A stretch of 64,000 bases of DNA, from the NCBI GenBank assembly GCA_965644295.1, contig CBFFRP010000268.1, positions 51,391 through 115,390 of the forward strand, given 5' to 3'. Below the pieces are notes generated by a model that did no database searches, was not told the origin of the DNA, and saw only the letters and a program-made list of their open reading frames with translations. The position numbers and the translations under genes are program-made. This stretch comes from Paraphysomonas bandaiensis. Taxonomy: Eukaryota; Protista; Chrysophyceae. Position 1 is the first letter of the stretch; the number at the start of each line of letters is the position of its first letter. This document shows positions 28,919-46,600 of this stretch, piece after piece.

Positions 28919-30196
28919 TGGATATGGTATTGTACACCTCATTGGCCGTGCGAATATTATTATATGAAGGATACATCTTGTTCAGTTGGGTGTCTATTAT
29001 AGTATTCAATGGCGTAAACGTTAAGAGCAGCCGAGCTTTGAAGTAGTGGCGTGATGCGGTGCACTTGTATCTGATACTGTATATTTTGTTTAAGTTGTGT
29101 AAAGTGACTGTTCAAACGAATTAAGTTTTACCTGATATAATTTTCTTTTGGATGAAAGTGGAATTTCATGGAACCATAATGTTTTGCTTCAGTGTATAGG
29201 TGTATATCAATCGCACGAAAAGAGACGACAGTTATGTAAAGCGTTACGGTTCTTTTACACACTTGACAATTCCTTTATTCATATAGTAGCTCGCAATCAA
29301 AATAACGCAAGAATTGTATATATTTAACCAATTTATTAAGTGTTTTGCTCACTCATAACTATAGAACGTCATGTATTAAGTACTCCCAGCTTGGTGACAT
29401 ACTAATCTGTGTGGCAATAGGCTTGACATTACCCTTAACATATAGATTTAGCTGCACAGCATATTCTACGAACTACATTCAACAATTGGCACTTTAATAA
29501 TTGATCATATCTATTATTTTAGCACGAATGGTTTACGGTCTGTATGTTCGACACTTATATCAGCCTCTACACCTGTCCCAGTAGGGACACCACCAGCTGA
29601 TACAGAGATATTATAATCCACTACTATTTTATGACAGTAGCTCCCCCTGTATGAACAATTACCTTATACTGTTTACAGGTTGAATAGAGTGGTAGAGTAT
29701 CCGATATCAGATATCTATTAATGAACTGGTACTAGCTATATCTAGCTATATCCATTGGACTGACAGGTGTACGTCTGCATATCCTATTTTCGTACCTATA
29801 TGTATCTCCTGTACCTACGGTGTGTATAGAGGTACCTACTGCATATACTGTACAGCTGTACGCCGCTGCTGTACAGCAGAGAACATCATATAGCATAATT
29901 TTGTCCATCAAACATTCTCTTTTAGGAAATTTCAAGCCAATCAATTGATTTAAATAAATTATACAAGTATATGATTTGTTCACAACACAACTGAACAGAT
30001 GTAATTAGAATTCCACCAAATATTTAGCAGCATATGGTCATGTACGCAATTATGATCTTGGCATCAACATTAGGTGAAGCTTATGTTATCTTCCACAGTT
30101 ATATATGATGTTGATCACGATCAAGTCATACCTAATTAAAGGGATTTAGAACTGATTAATTATTGTTTATTGACTCATTGAGTGAGTATCTATCTA

Positions 30197-31411
30197 ATGA
30201 GTAGTTCGTGTTTGGATGCAAAGAGAGATCCGACCCAATCTCCACAAGACAACTCCCTCTGCCGTGTGTCTACCCCGCAGTTGATTTCGGAGCAGGAAGA
30301 AAGTCCATCATCGAACTGCTCAGATTCCCATCTGGCGGATAGTGGTATGCATGTAAACGATGTTTCTGAAGAGAGTAATGTCAAGTGTCCATCAGCACTC
30401 GCTCATTCTGAATCATTGAAGATTGAAGAGCCCCCACTGAAGCGAATTCGTTCCAACTCAACAGAAGAGTCGTGTTCTAAATCAGAAAGCTGTGTGCCAC
30501 ATGATGCCTGTTCTTGGACAGGTAAAATATCTCAGCTAGATTCTCACATTTCGGAGTGCGAATACTCTCTCATTCGATGTCCATATGAACGATGTGGTAT
30601 ATCACTTCGCCGCAAAGACTTGAAAGAACACCAAGAAGAGTGCGCGTCGAAGGTATCACCGTGTCCATCCTGTGGGGTCAGTCAGAAGCAATCAGATCTT
30701 GACGAACATATGACAGCATGTAGGGCTACACTTTTGCCCTGTCCTAATAGATGCAAAGAAGGATCTGATGTTCGATTAATTCCCCGATCTAGTATACCGA
30801 GCCATATGTTGGAATGTCCGAATATTTCGTTGGCTTGTCCTTACGCGGCGGTTGGATGTTGCCAACGAGGCTCACGCTCAGAACTTCGAGAACACATGCG
30901 GGATGGGGCATCCCATATAAACACGCTTGTCAAAGCAGTGGTTACTCAAGGCAAACGTCTTGCTTATGTCTCTGAACAACTAAGCATTCGAACTTCAGAG
31001 CTGGTACACTTGAAAGACAGTTTGTCAGAAGCCAAAAACTGGACACATTCAGAGATTATTTGGCAAATACCTTCTATGCAGATATGTCGATCAGAATTTC
31101 AAATTATATCTGGTCGCAAGGTTTCAATTGCAATTTGGCCTGATCGGGACTCTGCAAGAGATATATGTCTAGGATTGAATATTCGCAGCCCTGTTCCCAC
31201 AACTGTAAAATTTGCTTTTGTTTTATATCGGGACAATGTTGAGATTAAACGTAGCATGGCAGCTATTGTTCATTGTTTTAATGGAACGGAATTATTTGGA
31301 TCGCCTTTCATGAGTATCAGCGATATTTTAGCCACAGGAGGAATCACAAAGCCGAAATCTTCTTTCACCATTGTGGCAGATATCGCAGTCAAACGTGCAT
31401 GCACATTTTAG
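30197..31411 (+). CDS. TRAF-type zinc finger protein with coiled-coil and MATH-like C-terminus
   Basis: CSWTGKISQLDSHISEC and repeated C-P...C...H...C fingers (CPYERC, CPSC, CPNRC, CPYAAVGC); helical segment; beta-rich tail IIWQI...VSIAIWP...LGLNI...FGSPF...FTIVADI. Confidence 0.85.
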   Translation: MSSSCLDAKRDPTQSPQDNSLCRVSTPQLISEQEESPSSNCSDSHLADSGMHVNDVSEESNVKCPSALAHSESLKIEEPPLKRIRSNSTEESCSKSESCVPHDACSWTGKISQLDSHISECEYSLIRCPYERCGISLRRKDLKEHQEECASKVSPCPSCGVSQKQSDLDEHMTACRATLLPCPNRCKEGSDVRLIPRSSIPSHMLECPNISLACPYAAVGCCQRGSRSELREHMRDGASHINTLVKAVVTQGKRLAYVSEQLSIRTSELVHLKDSLSEAKNWTHSEIIWQIPSMQICRSEFQIISGRKVSIAIWPDRDSARDICLGLNIRSPVPTTVKFAFVLYRDNVEIKRSMAAIVHCFNGTELFGSPFMSISDILATGGITKPKSSFTIVADIAVKRACTF

Positions 31412-32382
31412 TTGATATGAGTGAATATCAGTATAATTGATGATGTTTAGTTTTACCGTTCGTTATACAGTGCCAAATTCTTATTCTTAGTTTTTTATAA
31501 GTTTTTTCTTTTTAAGTTTATGATAAATTTAAAAAGTTTATTAATTTTGTTTATAAAATTGTTTTATACTAAGCAAGTACAGGAAGTAGTATCATGCATA
31601 TCGTTATACACTGGCATCTATTACAAGTTACGAGATAAGTACTACATTGTCTTTTTACATTCTCAATTCTTATCAGTTCACTTCTTGTAGCATAGACAAT
31701 ATGAGGACAAAGGATGCCATCATGGGAGGAACACATACTCTGATGATGTATTACAAAGTTGACGATTGGTTCTGTAACAGTATTAATTAGAAAACAAATT
31801 ATATATAGTATATATAGGTGGTTGGTGAGTACAATTCATGTGTCATGCATATTGGGTATTACATCAAACATGGAACCAACATTGAGGTCCACACTTTTCC
31901 CAGTACATTTACTATACTGTATGATCTCCTGTACAGTATTAGGGATCACCTCACTCTATTCCCAGGGTCATTTAATAGAACTTATTCCATCAAATACACA
32001 AACACAAAGATATGCCTCATATCTGATAGATTAATGTACCCTCATTGTAACTCTAGATCTTTAATGAGGACACTATACAGTCTGATGTACAGTATAGTAT
32101 CTATGTCCTCTATGATCATACGACTGGACAATATCCCAACAAGATATCTACATATCCGGGATTTTATATATAAATAATCAGTTTTTTCGAAAATCTTAGG
32201 ATTTGTAGGTAAAGTATTACTGCAGTACATAGCAGTGTATACAGGACAGTAGTAGCAGAAATACAGTATTGAAGTGGTGACTGTTACACTGTGCATATTA
32301 AGAAGTTTATATATATGCAGAGAGAGAGAGCAGATCCCTTCTGTTATGCTTAAAGCTATACACACTGCCTGGGATAGTTAAT

Positions 32383-34822
32383 ATGGGTGCTGGGGGATCA
32401 GTTGAACTGTCAACAGGTACCCTCCCTCGAGTGATTGTGGGTATTGATAAGCAAAGTAAAGTGGTGCGTTGTAAGAGGCAGCACTCTAAAGCTTGTCATG
32501 CACTGTCTCATCGATGGGAGGCCAGGGATTTAGCAGATACTTGGACAGTAGAATGTGAATATGAAGAGCCATATGAGTGCAAACTTTTTGAAGAAGAAAT
32601 TGAGAATCTCATAAAGTTTTTGGAGTTATGCTCCACACCCGTGTGGGTGGATTATGCGTGCATCAACCAAAACGACTATTCTGATAAAATAGCCCAGATT
32701 TCGATCATGGGATATTTATACTATAATGCCACTACACTTATTGTGGGATCAAAATTATCTCACGGCATGCCATCCGAGGACTACCTTTGTAGAGCTTGGT
32801 GTGTCCAAGAGAGAATGTTTGGCACCGTTCGACTTCCTTGGGATATGCAGTCTTGTGATCCAGCACGATTAATTGAATTTGCATGCTTATCATTAGAGCA
32901 TGTTCCCCATTTACGCGCTATACGGTATGTTAATGACGAAAAAGACAGACATGGTCGAATGTTATATCTGGACTACGTGGAAAAGCAGATGATGAAAGCA
33001 CTTCGGAGTTGGAAGTACCGCGCTGCAAGGATGCACATCAAGTCTATAATTAAGCTTATCCAGTCCCAAGAAACTAGTAACCGACGATACCAGGTGGCCT
33101 TGCAGGCATTAGAGATACGGCAGTTGATATCTTGCCATTCTGATGTTGATCCCGTTCAATGGGGCATGTTGATGTTTTCCAGTCAGTGTCAGGTTGCCAA
33201 AGATAGGTTATATGCAATTTGGGGAACCCCTATGTACCAAAAACGTCAAACTTTACCTTATGATGACCCTGAAAAAGCCTTGGAACTCGTAACACATTCC
33301 TTCCCTGCAGCTCGTTATGCATTCTATAACTCAGTGTCTGATCCATGCCAAAGTCTCTGTGGATATTTCACCTTTCGAGAATGGGATGAAGTGGCGCTCG
33401 ACATTATACTAGAAAATAAGACTTCTAAATCTAATCTTCCCATTACATGGTCTGCGCGATATACCCATAACACTTGCATTGTTGTCGTTGTTGGTGACCG
33501 CAGCGTGGGTTTCGGATTTGATAGGGACGTTTTTCGGCGCACACCAACAGCCGAAGTGCAAATATATCTTGTGGTAGATATTGGCGTTTTAAAGTCACAA
33601 AAGCATAAGAAATTGTTCTTTTCAGCTGTTGAACAGTTTTGCGAGCGTGTGGCTATTGTTTCGTCATCACTAACCAAAGGATTGAAAACTACTCTCGATA
33701 TACTATTTTTAGCCTTGTCGTTGGTACATGAAAGTCAGTTTTCACCTACCGATGTTGTTAGTAAAGAAGAGCACGACATGCTTATAGAAGAATCACTGGA
33801 GCACGATTATGTAATATGCGGTGGTGACTTTGATTCTATATGTGCACTGGAGCACGAGATGTGTGTTGAAAGCTCTCCCCCTTCTAATACGACACTCCAG
33901 TACTCTAACTTCTTGCGTGACGTGAAGTGTGCAATACTCGACATTCTAGTCAATGGCATGAAAATTTTGTTAGAGCAAAGTGAAATTCGAGATGTAATGA
34001 AACACGTTACCTGTCACGACGCTGTTCGGATAGTTAATTCTATAAATTTGGTGGGAAAAATTTCTCAGAGTGAATTCGATGCCTTGAAATCTCTTGGCAA
34101 CGATCCTATTATATTAGACTTGTGGGATCACAGGAGCGAATTCGAAGTGCCACATGTTTTAATGTACTACATACAAAGACTGGATCGGATAAATATGCCA
34201 GACTATGTACCAAATTTGGAAGAAATTCAGCACTGCCAGCTATCTCGCTCTTATAGCAGAGTTATTCGAAAGCATGTCAATCCCGTGAATGTTAGGTTTC
34301 ATAGTTATGTTAGGATTGAAGGATACGAAGATTTTCAATTTGTGGGTAAACTTGCATTTATTGCATTTGCAGTTCCGTTATACTGCTATAATGAGAAAAC
34401 CAGCAGCCCGGATGATAATAAAGTGGTATGTATACTGTTAGTAACTTCAATCGCCAGTAATTATTCTGCTGTAGCTTCTTGCGTTGAATGCTTTTTCTGA
34501 TCTCTGCTCATATATTGGTGGTTGCGGTAGTACCGCATATATTTCAATTGTTCTAGTACTACAAAAAAACGGGCGAGAATTTGAAAATATCGTGAAGGAG
34601 CACGGCATTCGTGACATGTTCCCTGATCATGAAGGTAATCAATACGACCCGGGCTCAGCTCAAGATTTTATTGTCTCTTTATTTAACGACATACATGATT
34701 CTATCCTCATTTCACGAAACACAAAGGTTTTTGTTACGGAGAATGTCAGAGATATTTTTGATTCCATCCTGCAAGATGTTGTTCTGACATCGTCAATGTA
34801 CGATACTGGATTATTAGTTTAG
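32383..34822 (+). CDS. HET-domain protein fused to a degenerate heterotrimeric G-alpha fold; 2 exons (intron 34426-34474)
   Basis: HET motifs ALSHRW, VWVDYACINQND..DKIAQISIMGYLY and RAWCVQE. G-alpha-like segments LWDHRSEFEV...YYIQRLDRINMPDYVP, AFIAFAVPLYCYNE, SIVLVLQK, IRDMFPDHEG, AQDFIVSLF and ENVRDIFDSILQDVVL...TGLL. Starts MGAGGS. Confidence 0.8.
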
Positions 34823-35575
34823 AGTTTAGAGCAGTCTGCCGGTCTTGTATATTGACAATCTGAATGTATAGTGACATTCTGTAGTTTAAAGTTTTATTGA
34901 TTATTCTACACATTAGCTGTACTAACACATACAGTTTGTTTGCAATATATTTTTAATGTGTCATAGATGTCTTCAATAGTAGTGATACTGTCGTGTCATG
35001 AGAAGAATGACACCAGTAAGAGCTTATGTAAGTAACCATCTATTATTTATACCTTTGCACTTATAATATATATGATCAAACGGTGAGTAACAAACAGAAG
35101 TATTAGCCGTAGTTAAACACGAATACATCAGTTGATAAAACTTAATATTTTCCTACTAATTCGAGTTTTTTTCGTAAAGAGTGGTTGCAGTGTCATAAAA
35201 AAGGCAGTCGTGAAGATTAAAAAAAGCGAACTCGGACAGAAAAGAATCAAATTAAAATATCTTTGCTCGATGAAGATGAATACGATTATGACAATTCCAG
35301 TCTAGTTCCAAATGACGACGCAGCGCAACGTTTGATTGATGGTAGCAGACAGCAGAAGTGAGCAAGACTTATAGCCAGCAAACACGTTACTGCAGTATGA
35401 AGCACTGGCATATCACAACCAAAAGGTTGAAAGGTTGTTCCGTAGAGCTAAGATTATCGTTTTGACGGGTTTGACTCCTCGACATTTAAGAGCTACTTAG
35501 ATTTTTACGCATGAACAGTCGCCTCTGGAATGAAATGACAGTTGAGGTAGCTATATTGACAGCTAGTCTACTTTA

Positions 35576-40699: not shown

Positions 40700-43600
40700 A
40701 TGTTTGATATTCAACAGAGTGCTAATCGATTACAGAATGCTGCAACAAGTTCTGAGAGAATTAATGCTCTTAAGCAGTTACAGGTATATGATTATATGAT
40801 AATAATAACATTTACAATTGAATTATGATTTATTTGTAGAAACTGTCCAAAGAGAACTGTCAAGATGTGGGGAATATAGCAATGGAATTGATTCTAGATT
40901 TGCTTAAAGAACATGGTGATTCGGATGAATACATTGAAGCACTAGAGCTTGTATCGAAACTTGTTAAACCGAAAGCAGGAGAGGCTGCGAAGGTGAATGC
41001 ATTAAAAATACTTGAAGATGCCATGAAAATAGAGTTACTCTTGGATTTACTTGAGCATGAAGACGGGCTTGTCGGGGTAATGGCAAGTGAGATACTGACC
41101 AATATCCATACCATTGCAGGGGAAGATCTGGAGAAAACCATACAAGATTGCCCAGCTGGTATGACAAAACTACTCAATCGGATGCCTGACAGGACAAGAG
41201 AAGAAGTCAGCAACCAGGCCATTATTTTAATAAGACAGCTAACTTCAAGCAACGAAGAAATGAAAAAGACTGTTGCCTTTAACGAGGTTGTTTTTTGTAA
41301 CTTTGGCTTCTTTTAGTTTTTGTTAATCTTTGCTTTTCAGGGATTCGAGACTTTGTTTGGTATTATGGAAAGTGAAGGCGGATGCAAAGAGGCTGGGGCA
41401 GTTGTCCAGGATTGCCTACAAATATGTACAAATGTGCTAGATAACAGTGAAACTTGTCAGAGACTGTTCTATGGCATGGGAGGGGGGTGGCACAATCGCC
41501 TACTGGACTTTTTTTCTCCAATGTCAGTGGAACAATTTTCCAGTAGACCGGAATCTCATGGAGAAGGGAACGAAGATGAGGATATGTATGGGCCTGTGGG
41601 CCCATGGTACGAGCAGCCAGGCCGACTAAAGTGTGCAATTCTTGCATTGGAGGCATTTTCTGCTTCTATGAGCACTTCGAATGCTTATGAAAAGGTGCTG
41701 GTCAATTCTGTAGATGAAGTTACTGGAGCCTGTGGGCACTGGGTAATTCGTGGAGGTCCAGCAGAAATGCTGCTTCTCTGTCTGCGCATACTTGAGCAAT
41801 TAGCATCCGCTTCAACCCCTGTTTTTGCCCAGCGGATGTTCGACGTGCTGATGCGGTTTGTCCCTTCGGTCGCTGGTGTTCACTTGCCATTCAGTGGATC
41901 CACTCCTCTAGTATTCAGTTGGAAGCTGATACCAACAGATGATCGACGTATGATATCACTTGTAAATCTGCTGGCCGAACAGTACATATTCCCATCGAAG
42001 GCTTGGTGGGGCCATGAGTCTAGTACTCGGAGTGATGTTAGAGAGGGAACTCTTGTGCGAAGAGGTGATTACATGGTGGGGAGTGAGTTTTGGATGGGTG
42101 CTCTGAAGGTTTTGCAACGCATGCTGGCAGCAGATGAAGCTACAAGCGGGATGGTAATGCAGCATGTGCTGGCTCCCCCTCCACCCCCCAGCGCTATGGA
42201 CGGGGAAATGGGCTTGGATATGGGCATGCCTGTTGAAGCTGTACAGATGGACCTTGGTGGAGTTGTTTTCGGAGTTCTACTGAACAGCATAGAGCGGTTA
42301 GTTGCTAGGGCTGGAGGGGCCACTGCTGGAGCTCAAATTCTCCAATCTGATGTTGCCGCTGCTATCCGTGCTGCAAATGTATTGTCACTTGTGCTTCTTC
42401 ATGGCGGGTTGCTGGCCAGTGAACTATGTACAGCTATATATACATTTCATCTCTCTTCCCACCGCACAGCACTGGATCCCTCTGCTGCGTCACTATCGGC
42501 CCATGCAGAAACAGGATCCCCCATACTTCCCTACCTATTGTCCCTATGCTCAAGAGTGGTGCGTGTGCCAGGAGTAGGATTTACTGTAGCTGCAGCTGTT
42601 TTGCGGCTTCTAACCTCCGCAGCGAGTGGATGTGAGCGAGCTACATGCCAGGTCAGTACACGGCTCAAACTCTATGCATATGTTACTAATGCAGTGTAAC
42701 TCGGTAGATGCTGGACGATCCAACTAATTTTTTCATTGTGGATCTGGCTACTCGTTCGAGTGAAGGTGCTGGGGTACCTGAAAATATGCAGGTTGTTTGC
42801 TGCCTGTTCTTGGGAGCATGTTTCGATTCGTTTGGTCCGGATACTCACAATTCTACTGAGGGAGTTGGAGTCGATGCAGAAAGTAGACTGTGTAGGAGAT
42901 CGATATTAACTATGATCGACTCTAAAATTGGTTTATCTCGGTACAGTGATATCCTGAAGCGCCCACTTGGGAAGGCTCCCCGCTCAGGCTCTACAGTGCC
43001 TGCATTGGACAGTAGCACTAGTCCTGAAGAACTCTTTTTCTGTGAATCGTATCGAACTTTTTATATATCACAAGTTGACAGCATTCGCTCAGCTATATTT
43101 GATTTTTATAGTGGTTCTGCTCCCGGAGAGGAATCGGCGGAGGGACAGGTTATTAAGATGCAGAAAGAAACAATTGCTCAGTTGGAGCACGAGCTGGAAA
43201 GAATGCGTGGAGGGGAGGTGGTATCGTCAACTGCAAATGAGTCTGTGAGTGACGATGAGATTAGCGCACTGAAACAACGGCTTGCTGCTATGGAGTCTGA
43301 GCTGTCAGCACAAACTGAGCTTAATGAGATGTTGGAGGAAACGTGCAGAGAGAAAGAGGAAACGATCGAGAGCATGTCTCAGAGTGAGACTGCTCTGGTT
43401 CAAGAATTAGAGGAAATTCGGTCGAGAGCAGAAGCTGCGGAGGCAGAACTGATATCCAGCAAGGATAAATATGCCGCTATATTAAAGGAAAAGGCTGGGA
43501 ATGGTGTACACTCGCAAGGCCAAGTAATTCCAGAGCAAATTAATTTGAAATTACAGAATTTGGAAGCAGAAAATGAAAAGTTGAGATTGCATATGCAGTC

Positions 43601-46600
43601 TTATGAGGTAGGAAATGGAGATAGTCAAGAGCTACTAGCATCAAAAGACCAGGAAATATTGAAATTGAAGGAGAAAGTCGTGAATCTAGTGGAAGGAAAG
43701 AAAAGCCTTGCTGAGGAGGTAGATGTACTGAATCGCAAGCTCATGCTTCTAGAGGAGGACCTACGGACACCAATGCCACACGAGAAGGTGAGCAGCGCCA
43801 AAGTTTCTGAATTGGAAGCTCGAAATGCTAACCTGAAAACCCAAATTTGGGAGTTGGAGTCCAATATTTCGACAATGCGGTCAGCGATGACTTCAGAGTA
43901 CGATGAGCTGAGAGAGTCTGTGGAGCTGCTTGTGTCGCTCTCGGAAATAGAAACCAATGACTACTTTTCTGGTCCGCATGATAGAGGTGGGGATACTTTG
44001 CCCCGAAAGCTCTCCGGGATGTTGCAATACTGTGTAGATGCGCTGGCATACGCTTCTGGGCATTGTAGTGATATGTCAGAAGGAGTAGGTGTGAGTTTTA
44101 AGGGTGATGAGAGTAAGGGTCTCCAGCGACTTATGGAAGCTGTCGGACAGCTTTGTGAGCAAGTACGCGAATACGAAGCTGAAATTAACGAAGAGCAGAG
44201 CTTCAGATCGAAACTGGAAGCTGTGGAGTCCGAAGTGGAAGCTTTACAGGACCTTAATGATGCTGCTCAGCAGCGAATCGAGGAGCTTGAGGCGGAGAAG
44301 ATTCGCACTACTGATGTTCCGAAAATATCGATGTCAGATGATATACTTCGCCTCCAGGAACTCTTAGAACAACGAGATGAAAAAATCATGCAGCTCGAAA
44401 GTGCCTTGGAGTCCGCCACAAGTGGGGATGCTGACCATGTAGCTGCACTAGAGCAGGAGGTAAAATTACTTCTTGAAAAGCTTTCTGTGGAGTCGGAGCG
44501 AAATGAATCGTTGCATTCCGAAACGTTATCTCTGAATAACACTATTGATTCCCTGAACGCAGATCTCAAGAAAGCATTGGATGAATTACACATGAGGCCT
44601 GCCCCCTCGAGCCCTTCGTTAGAAGAGTTTACATCGTTGCAGGCGGATTTGAACGCTGCAGTCGACGCAAATGGAGTTCTATCATCTGAGATTGAAGCAT
44701 ACCGTGAGAAGATTCGTCGTGTAGATGAAGAGTTGGCTGATGCTGTGAGACAACTGGAGGAGAAATCTCATGCTTGTAAAGTATTGGAGGAAGCAGTCGA
44801 ATCTTTTCGAGATGCCGAAGAGCAAAAAAATCAGAGTAATTCTGGAGCATCGAGCACTGTTGCTGCTGAGAACGCCGTGCTCGCTGAACAGATTAGAGAG
44901 CTAGAAGCTACATTGTTGTCGAAGTCACAGACTATAGAGAAGTTAGGTGCCGAACTTGATGTCAAATCTGAAGAATATATCGATATTTCTAAAACGCTGG
45001 ATAGCTACAAGGAATCGATTGCTAATTGTAAAGCCGACACTGCGAGCCTTGAGGACAAGGTACATGAACTAACTGCAGAAATGATAATTCTAGCAGAGAA
45101 TAAAAAGGGTTTGGAAGATCAGCTACGAATGAAAACGGATGAGAATTCAACTTTGAAGGATACCGTTCAATCCCTCGCAGATCAGATTGACATACTGAAA
45201 TCTGATCAACTAAGCCTGAATGATGAAATAAGAAGACTGCAGGATCTGATAAAGTCGAAAGATGAAGATATTGATGCGTTAAAGTCTCAAGAAAAACTAA
45301 CGGAACAAATTCAAAGTTCAGCGGCACTCGTCGAGCGCGAATTGACCAACTTGAAGGAAGAGTTGTCTGCAGCTTACAGTAATAACGAGTCGCTGACGAT
45401 GGAACTTCAGTCTTGCAAAGAGAAGTCCTCTTCTCTGGATGCTGAGATCATAGAAATTTCTCGACTTTTAAATGAAAAAACGCAAGCACATGATATCTTG
45501 CTGAAAGAGTGTGAAGAATATCGCGAGGAAATAATAAGCTCTATCGCACTGAAGGAGTCTATTAGTCGTCTCGAGACTGACAAGGTTCAACTTATGGCCG
45601 AGATCGAGGAAATGAAGGTTGTGGCACAGAAAGGGGAGAATGATAGGGAGAAAGTACGGAAAGAAGTTATGTCCGCATTGGAAGCGGAATATGCTGACCG
45701 CCTGACCTCTGCAGATGAAGCAGCTTATTTGACGCGAGAACAGCTAAGGAAGGCAGAGCTTGAGCTGGAGAGCATTAAGGAGTCCAATACTTCGTTACAG
45801 GATCAACTGAATGACGCGAGAGAATTGGCAGAAGGATATGAATCGGCCTTACAGGCAAGAGACGAAGATATGGAAGCGTTGAAGAAATCACTTGAAGCGA
45901 AAGCAATTGAGCACAATCGACTCTTAGAAAGTTTTTTGTCGCAAAAAGAGAAATTAGCCGCTGCAACATCTGGAGAGACATTCTCTACAGCAGATAAGAT
46001 TCGATTGGAATCAGAGAAGTCTGACTTGATGGAGAAAGTTGCGACTCTGAAAGAGCAGCTCAGTCGATGCGAACTACAGTGCCAAGAACTCATTGAAGAT
46101 GTGAACATCAAGAATGGTAAGATATCCGGGTATGATTTAGTTATCCGAAATCTAGAAGGCGAAATCAACGGGCTGGTAGAGAGTAAAGAGTCCACGGAAG
46201 ACTCGTACAAAGCAAGTCTGCAAGATTTGGAAGAGAAACTTGCTGATACAAGTGCAGCCTACGCTAAGCTGCAAGGTGATAATGCGAATATGCAAGCTTC
46301 CATGCAGGAAGCACTACAAGGATACAAAGTGGAATTGGAAGACTGTAAAAGCGCACTAAAATCTTTGGAACAAAAGGAAGCAAGCCTATTAAGGTGTGTT
46401 GTTTGCGATATGTGTATAGCGTGTATAAATACATGACAGGCAAGTAGAGAGCTTTTCCAAATTTTCTCAGGATATCCGTCACTACTTTCACGAAGTTGCT
46501 GGAAGTCTTCCAGATAACGTATGCTGTAATCTACAGCAAACGGTTCAGGAGTCCAATACTGTGGAATCAATATTGCGTTACGTGAAGGATGTATCGAGAG

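Follow-up and report, generated by a model that had tools for sequence, protein, structure and literature searches.

A HET module fused to a G-alpha-derived domain with degenerate nucleotide-binding motifs in the chrysophyte Paraphysomonas bandaiensis

The stretch of DNA analyzed here (64,000 nt, hereafter the window) belongs to contig CBFFRP010000268.1 in the genome assembly GCA_965644295.1 of Paraphysomonas bandaiensis, a member of a genus of colourless, phagotrophic marine chrysophytes that live on bacteria. Its plus strand contains two open reading frames (ORFs), an ATG-initiated one at positions 32383..34500 (705 amino acids, aa) and another one at positions 34484..34822 (112 aa; all positions are in window numbering). 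Excision of 49 nt (GTATGT...TAG, positions 34426-34474) brings both ORFs into a single frame that encodes a 796-aa protein, in which a heterokaryon incompatibility (HET) module is followed by a region related to the alpha subunits of heterotrimeric G proteins (G-alpha). Judging from the sequence, this is a HET family protein by its profile, motifs, and fold, and its C-terminal part is derived from a G-alpha yet does not itself qualify as a working one. In fungi, few cell-death modules are as common as HET domains; we know of no established role for them outside that kingdom, and, to our knowledge, G-alpha subunits are almost never fused to effectors. The original prediction, made from the letters of the DNA alone, was of a single gene for a HET domain and a GTPase-dead G-alpha, interrupted by an in-frame intron at 34426-34474. 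Indeed, one ORF and one contig span both parts, so that separate transcription of the two halves could be set aside, and the intron is borne out by the in-frame joining and by the same 49-nt skip in contigs from two public runs.

Public sequencing runs were aligned to positions 32200-35000, and the evidence of expression consists of the contigs assembled from them. Two runs from a sister strain (organism B), X8 and X9, each gave one contig of ∼2.6 kb, at a depth of 17-39x, that extends from the leader through both halves of the gene into the 3' untranslated region (UTR) and skips exactly 49 nt (GT..AG) at 34425/6-34473/4. With their ends at the gene borders at this depth, these contigs look like transcripts. 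Pieces that are at least 99% identical to the gene also come from two marine metatranscriptome runs with polyA selection, at 33730-34247 and 34574-34772; no piece bridges the intron. The gene is near-absent from the 2015 culture transcriptomes that bear the same species labels (X21-X23). The public contig data indicate that the gene is transcribed and spliced.

The coding sequences of the two strains differ by 16 substitutions in all, 10 synonymous and 6 non-synonymous, which corresponds, by the Nei-Gojobori method, to a ratio of non-synonymous to synonymous substitution rates (dN/dS) of 0.16 (binomial p = 0.0005 versus neutrality). Seven synonymous and three non-synonymous changes fall in the HET module (dN/dS 0.12). 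Indels between the strains are confined to the 3' UTR. They include a 19-nt one at position 34853 and a 7-nt unit, AGTTTAG, that spans the stop codon (34816-34822) and is tandemly duplicated here and single in the sister strain, with the same protein end in both. With 16 substitutions between two strains, the whole gene is shown to be kept under purifying selection. Given an intact ORF in each strain and a dN/dS of 0.16, a pseudogene was also set aside.

The N-terminal part of the protein scores 37.9 bits against the Pfam profile PF06985 (HET; cut-off 22.5) over residues 40-122, and the locus scores 39.5 bits in a six-frame search of the genome. This match is restricted to profile positions 3-85; block 3 was recognized by alignment alone. 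All three conserved HET blocks (A.S[HY].W, W.D..CI.Q, and R.W..QE) are nevertheless found, in the form of ALSHRW, VWVDYACINQ, and RAWCVQE, and align with those of fungal and stramenopile HET domains, so that the HET domain of the original prediction stands. The conserved Glu of block 3 (Glu143) is retained within the HET family alignment.

In an exhaustive HMMER search, 1.84 billion representative proteins yielded 75 hits, which revealed that residues ∼15-424 form one conserved module, 35 to 43% identical to stand-alone proteins of 420 to 470 aa. This is a rare stramenopile family; its named members include XP_008866784 from the oomycete Aphanomyces invadans (466 aa, annotated as “heterokaryon incompatibility domain-containing protein”). 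The stand-alone proteins share the same ∼425-residue module with its three blocks, the DRLYG.WGVP and LPYD.P motifs, and a start of the MGxxGS[IV]E type but, unlike the fusion protein, stop where the module stops and lack a G-alpha. In other relatives, a PX domain is present at the N terminus or a MIR domain at the C terminus. The N-terminal myristoylation consensus noticed at the outset (MGAGGSV) is present and conserved across the HET relatives: the MGAGGSVE start found here is matched by MGAAGSIE, MGGGGSIE, MGSGASIE, and MGASGSVE, and the pattern MG[AGS][AGS]GS[IV]E recurs in the family members P0004, P0005, P0013, and P0031. Given these similar starts in several relatives, the consensus is a trait of the HET family rather than one borrowed from G-alpha. 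Together with the PX domain in one relative, the conserved start makes membrane targeting look like a family trait as well. The protein is predicted from this motif to be N-myristoylated.

Modelled with the family alignment, residues 1-440 form one confident unit, with a predicted local distance difference test (pLDDT) score of 88 and a predicted template modelling (TM) score of 0.87. In the ESM Atlas, the ten nearest cluster types are all fungal HET proteins (TM 0.39-0.50 over 211-315 residues). A fold search of the whole 440-residue module against the PDB returned only generic helical-bundle matches; TIR folds surfaced only when the core alone was used. The PDB matches of the module and of the core included no solved HET structure. 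The AlphaFold2 model of the core (residues 10-175) has a pLDDT of 93.6. In a Foldseek comparison of this model with the PDB, nine of the ten best rows were TIR domains, none of them significant (E ∼0.5-2, TM ∼0.3), and in a Foldseek-independent search (VIA) the lead belonged to TIR and nucleoside deoxyribosyltransferase folds, with Z scores of 6.7-4.0 over ∼100 residues: the TIR domain of SpbK (Z = 6.7), a TIR domain from Hydra (6.0), nucleoside deoxyribosyltransferase (6evs; 6.0), and the TIR domain of SARM1 (5.9). The TIR domains of RUN1 and RPS4 were also among the best PDB matches. The NAD-cleaving TIR effectors (SARM1, TIR domains of plant TNL proteins, bacterial Thoeris ThsB, and SpbK) provide the best solved-structure matches of the HET core, which, on its predicted model, appears weakly TIR-like. 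Compared to TIR domains, the HET core has extra N-terminal beta-hairpins and is followed by an extension of ∼250 residues. In contrast to the TIR enzymes, we know of no HET enzymology. A link between HET and TIR domains was proposed, and HET homologues in stramenopiles were noted, by Dyrka et al. in 2014 (PMC4986451), and the TIR-headed fold matches of the core agree with that proposal. Like the TIR enzymes, block 3 has a conserved Glu (Dyrka et al. 2014, PMC4986451), a putative equivalence of residues. According to reviews from 2023 and 2025, no enzymatic activity of HET domains has been established (PMC10197012, PMC12881547).

The region downstream of the HET module matches the Pfam G-alpha profile PF00503 in each of the two exons. 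When the exons are scored alone (the cut-off being 48.8 bits), exon 1 gives 38.2 bits for residues 514-640, aligned to profile positions 57-188, and exon 2 gives 28.4 bits for profile positions 249-331, collinear with the exon 1 match. Similarly, residues 549-642 from exon 1 match residues 108-198 of a solved Gq chain (E = 1.2e-7), and exon 2 independently matches Gq residues 260-345 (E = 5e-7). A profile built for this analysis from 113 canonical G-alphas matches the spliced protein in a single unbroken domain at 87.4 bits (residues 517-795 on profile positions 75-356). Ordinary G-alphas score 125-429 bits on this profile, and the best of 200 shuffles used as a control scores 3.7 bits. The Gq matches of both exons, the profile score, and the shuffle maximum settle the G-alpha homology. 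The full-length pseudo-G-alpha that had been proposed is upheld inasmuch as residues ∼470-796 are G-alpha-derived and keep the order of the fold, but it is not quite full-length: the alphaN helix is cut to ∼20 residues directly behind the HET module, and switch II has suffered a deletion.

In an alignment with the host's own G-alpha and others, the G1 motif (P-loop) LLGAGESGKST is replaced by VICG-GDFDSIC, the switch I motif R.RT.GI by Q.SRSYSRVI, the G4 motif NKxD by QKNG, and the G5 motif TCATDT by KVFVTE. The G3 motif DVGGQ is missing, with the deletion running through switch II, where the conserved Arg, Lys, Trp, His, Cys, and Phe positions are lost. Among the positions that are near-invariant (at least 90%) in canonical G-alphas, 4 of 35 are kept in G1-G5 versus 29 of 92 elsewhere (Fisher p = 0.024), which means that the loss is concentrated on the nucleotide site and switch II, with the fold core retained. 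Alignment and count thus agree with the initial reading of an eroded P-loop, DVGGQ, and NKxD among retained structural residues. The G-alpha part is predicted not to bind GTP and, with all five nucleotide-binding motifs lost, presumably cannot serve as a nucleotide switch. Its best-kept portions are the helical domain (the segment aligned to Gq residues 108-198) and the alpha5 helix with the tail, where IFDSILQDVVL...YDTGLLV corresponds to the profile consensus vfdac.kdiil...lknsgfl. The alpha5 tail is the receptor-contacting element of G-alpha. Like canonical G-alphas (PF00503; in this genome, the loci C141 and C451), the fusion protein has the helical domain inserted in the Ras-like domain, the alpha5 helix, and the ...sG[LF]L end; unlike them, it lacks G1-G5 and switch II, has a truncated alphaN, and carries its lipid-anchor motif 470 residues upstream, where the HET module begins. 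The features of the gene are listed in Table 1.

Table 1. Features of the HET-G-alpha fusion gene (window numbering)
Feature	Position	Strand	Evidence
5' leader	32328..32382	+	X8 and X9 contigs start at 32328/32329, 55 nt ahead of the ATG
Coding exon 1, residues 1-681: HET module, linker, and first two-thirds of the G-alpha-like domain; no internal stop	32383..34425	+	Single contig in X8 and in X9
MGAGGSV, N-myristoylation consensus (Gly2, Ser6)	32383..32403	+	Sequence reading and family alignment
HET core, residues 10-175	32410..32907	+	Pfam, alignment, AlphaFold2 model
HET block 1, ALSHRW, residues 40-45	32500-32517	+	Alignment with fungal and stramenopile HET domains
HET block 2, VWVDYACINQ, residues 87-96	32641-32670	+	Alignment with fungal and stramenopile HET domains
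HET block 3, RAWCVQE, residues 137-143, with Glu143	32791-32811	+	Alignment only (outside the Pfam match)
Family-specific extension of the HET module, residues 176-425	32908..33657	+	Identity to homologues; modelled as one globular unit with the core
Linker and remnant of G-alpha alphaN, residues 426-470	33658..33792	+	pLDDT drop at 427-431; alignment with canonical G-alpha
Degenerate P-loop YVICGGDFDSICALEHEM replacing LLGAGESGKSTIFKQM, residues 476-493; Lys and Ser/Thr lost	33808..33861	+	Alignment
G-alpha helical domain, residues ∼505-620, best-conserved part	33895..34242	+	Pfam, Gq match, profile alignment
G3/switch II remnant HSYVRIEGYEDFQF, residues 640-653; no DVGGQ, deletion	34300..34341	+	Alignment
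Phase-0 intron, 49 nt, GTATGT..TAG	34426..34474	+	“Skips 49, GT..AG” in X8 and X9; C451 intron at the matching position
Coding exon 2, residues 682-796 and stop: alpha3, beta5 (QKNG, 711-714), KVFVTE (765-770), alpha5	34475..34822	+	Pfam, Gq match, alignment
Alpha5 helix and C-terminal tail, ...IFDSILQDVVLTSSMYDTGLLV, canonical end kept	34745..34819	+	Alignment; profile consensus ...nlknsgfl
3' UTR, reaching past 35000 in contigs	34823..35000	+	3 substitutions and 2 indels between strains

The leader contains an out-of-frame upstream ORF of 11 codons that runs from an ATG at 32346 to a TAA ending at 32381, with a single nucleotide left before the main ATG; the contigs of the sister strain have the identical upstream ORF. 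This short ORF may limit translation of a potentially toxic protein.

The assembly (62.6 Mb in 669 contigs) encodes four canonical G-alpha loci, at least seven RGS loci, and a minimum of 11 TIR_2 loci that pass the Pfam cut-off, but only a single HET locus. The identity of the G-alpha part to the host's own G-alphas is ∼18-26%, the closest match inside the genome being C451, at 26%. In the alignment, the 49-nt intron and the 47-nt intron of this canonical paralogue (L002 2176-2222) fall on the same codon boundary, following ...DDNKV here and ...SANRM in C451. Spliced at that intron, C451 is 100% identical to the database protein P0200. A transcript of sample MMETSP1103 (taxon 36769, the genus Paraphysomonas) matches C141 at 100% identity, and another transcript of this sample matches C451 at 357 of 358 positions. 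The host is a stramenopile, as guessed at the outset. Given the intron position common with C451, the G-alpha part goes back to a host G-alpha gene copied at the genomic level and is neither a retro-copy nor foreign; a horizontal origin was set aside for the same reason. In the phylogeny, the G-alpha part could not be placed, its branch length of ∼10 against a median of 0.27 being subject to long-branch attraction. A second apparent G-alpha locus, a 516-aa ORF on contig C149 (L014 2138-3688), turned out to be an Arf-family GTPase (91 bits to Arf) with an N-terminal extension of ∼200 residues and was rejected.

Several features of these genomic surroundings can be recorded in their own right. 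Both C141 and C451 have tracts of short-unit repeats, ∼0.6 kb long (L001 717-1337 and L002 514-1158), 100-300 bp before their start codons; ORFs through these tracts read as CMYV or HTYI repeats. Many of the TIR_2 loci, such as C280:32850-33173 and C111:17249-17572, are located within open frames of 600 to 1100 aa. In the window, a zf-TRAF ORF (30182-31411, plus strand; 47.8 bits in Pfam, with weak PDB matches to the zinc fingers of TRAF6 and TRAF4) lies on the same strand 970 bp upstream of the fusion gene. TRAF adaptors sit beside TIR pathways in animals. This adjacency may be due to chance, as two HET homologue loci that were inspected have no such neighbour. Two downstream ORFs, 41320-42699 (plus strand, 459 aa) and 42708-46436 (plus strand, 1242 aa), showed no Pfam family at E ≤ 0.001.

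None of the 75 hits from the representative protein collection combines HET and G-alpha in one protein, and neither does any named ESM Atlas cluster (of at least 50 members). Two metagenome scans, with peptide patterns in one case and the exon-exon junction in the other, came up empty; word-indexed protein searches, first with exon 1 and then with alignment A1, gave no hits or no more than four HET relatives. No G-alpha gene lies beside the HET homologues at the two loci inspected. In the literature searched, no HET-G-alpha fusion is described, and the topics of HET in stramenopiles and HET NADase yielded only Dyrka et al. 2014 and reviews. Among these collections and this literature, the HET-G-alpha architecture is new, in keeping with the initial impression that no such fusion had been described. 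So far, it has been met only in a small set of close strains or species labels (organisms A to D).

The fungal HET proteins (HET-E/D/R, TOL, PIN-C, and HET-6) belong to the same Pfam family, have the same three blocks, and show the closest predicted folds. They combine the HET domain with NACHT/WD40, ankyrin, TPR, or variable regions and form large polymorphic families, whereas the present gene occurs as a single copy in a unicellular flagellate, with a G-alpha-like domain attached to HET. In the fungal proteins, HET is the N-terminal effector, and its overexpression leads to cell death (PMC4986451, PMC12881547).

The plant XLG proteins (XLG1-3) are, by analogy, functionally the nearest known thing to the fusion protein. 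XLGs act in immunity and cell death; their N terminus consists of a nuclear localization signal (NLS) and a Cys-rich region, not of an effector domain. The N terminus of the fusion protein is a HET module in place of the NLS and Cys-rich region, so that the resemblance is functional only. It lies in the combination of a long N-terminal extension with a G-alpha-like domain that is devoid of key nucleotide-binding residues and largely nucleotide-independent (bioRxiv 10.1101/795088). XLG2 keeps the binding of G-beta-gamma and RGS, whereas the fusion protein has switch II deleted. XLGs have been described as unique to plants (10.1101/795088), and for that reason the two probably arose independently, although the tree could not place the domain.

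On the most likely model, favored at about even odds, the dead G-alpha would serve for docking or regulation independently of any nucleotide and would thereby position or switch a HET effector bound to the membrane. The lipid anchor would keep the protein at the membrane. Without any nucleotide, the dead G-alpha would dock or regulate, probably toward a receptor or another G-alpha-binding partner, and this docking would position or switch the HET module as the output. Such an output could be signalling of the cell-death or immune type and might, as in TIR domains, be directed at NAD. A docking or regulatory role is favored because there is no nucleotide switch, the G-beta-gamma surface is gone, and what is left are the helical domain and the alpha5 tail. 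A precedent is the G-alpha-like domain of plant XLG2, which barely binds nucleotide and still binds partners (10.1101/795088). Complex prediction for the HET module and the split G-alpha-like domain gave a score of 0.00 with a poorly folded partner, which speaks neither for nor against binding.

Several points weigh against this model. The TIR resemblance of the HET core is weak (Z below 8, Foldseek E ∼0.5-1), and no match to the Pfam TIR families (TIR and TIR_2) was detected at E values up to 1. Accordingly, of the kinship with TIR NADases originally suggested, the part that survives is that TIR leads the fold matches of the core; the match itself is weak (Z = 6.7), and Pfam does not recognize it. 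Even for fungi, the biochemistry of HET is described as undetermined (PMC12881547), and both the HET activity and the partner of the fusion protein are putative. The conservation of alpha5 could be purely structural. For the G-alpha part, dN/dS is 0.27, with three synonymous and three non-synonymous changes, too few to stand alone. Finally, the RNA status of X8 and X9 is only guessed, X9 being flagged as “probably DNA,” and their intron-less form could be DNA of the sister strain. The joined frame is confirmed either way, since, as DNA, these contigs would show an intron-less continuous ORF in that strain.

An alternative is that the G-alpha part serves as an integrated decoy: it would mimic real G-alphas, and its binding or modification by a microbial or viral effector would fire the HET module, in the manner of the integrated decoys of plant immune receptors. 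Such a role would suit a non-catalytic domain joined to a death-type effector, a genome with an immune-like TIR repertoire, and a host that, as a phagotrophic bacterivore, constantly meets bacterial toxins. However, the Arg of switch I, the Gln of switch II, and the Cys at position -4 from the C terminus, which we take to be the targets of known G-alpha-modifying toxins, are all absent and fall in the most eroded regions, and ∼18-26% identity to the host's own G-alphas would make for poor mimicry. In addition, the 796-aa protein has no Pfam match to a NOD (NACHT or NB-ARC), and its gene is single-copy and, over 16 substitutions, under purifying rather than diversifying selection. A decoy, as put forward in the original prediction, is unlikely, and the version aimed at known G-alpha-modifying toxins is weakened by the absent target residues and an identity to host G-alphas of only ∼26%.

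The example of XLG2 (10.1101/795088), along with the presence of canonical G-alphas and RGS proteins in the genome, also brings up an atypical alpha subunit that would bind G-beta-gamma (and RGS) without nucleotide, either tethering the HET module to the heterotrimer or sequestering G-beta-gamma. Such coupling to G-beta-gamma, also suggested at the outset, finds little room in the sequence: switch II, through which G-beta is mainly contacted, is deleted or rewritten, with its conserved Arg, Lys, Trp, His, Cys, and Phe positions gone, and the truncated alphaN (∼20 residues) follows directly on the HET module, all of which makes an XLG-like subunit improbable. A six-frame search for the G-gamma family gave no match anywhere, controls included, and is hence uninformative. 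Lastly, an evolutionary accident, in which a HET gene would read through into a decaying G-alpha duplicate with a functionless or tolerated tail, could account for the loss of all catalytic motifs, the very long branch (∼10 versus 0.27), the restriction to one narrow lineage, and a tail-only dN/dS resting on 3 + 3 changes, but is very improbable given that ∼330 codons and an in-frame 49-nt intron are still open despite ∼75% divergence in AT-rich DNA, that fold-core residues are kept and G boxes preferentially lost, and that the ORF is intact in both strains, with indels only in the 3' UTR and an overall dN/dS of 0.16.

Within the preferred reading, that of a nucleotide-independent docking or regulatory domain, a more specific and decidedly speculative version can be formulated. 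Myristoylated HET/TIR-like proteins of stramenopiles might be membrane-proximal receptor-signalling enzymes, and the one from Paraphysomonas might have acquired a nucleotide-free G-alpha whose alpha5 tail docks on activated seven-transmembrane receptors. If that were true, the gene would be a “Rosetta stone” fusion, in which receptor activation would recruit and cluster a TIR-like effector that consumes NAD or makes a messenger. It would represent a G-protein-independent output of G-protein-coupled receptors and the first physiological context for HET beyond fungal incompatibility.

By physically joining HET and G-alpha under selection, the gene provides a concrete and testable partner system for HET, namely, the membrane, a receptor, or the G-protein machinery. 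The host is a culturable marine bacterivore, which makes these ideas testable at the bench. The protein also offers a natural “dead” G-alpha, independent of the plant XLGs, for the study of nucleotide-free functions of G-alpha, and it adds to the evidence that free-living protists build immune or death effectors through domain shuffling.

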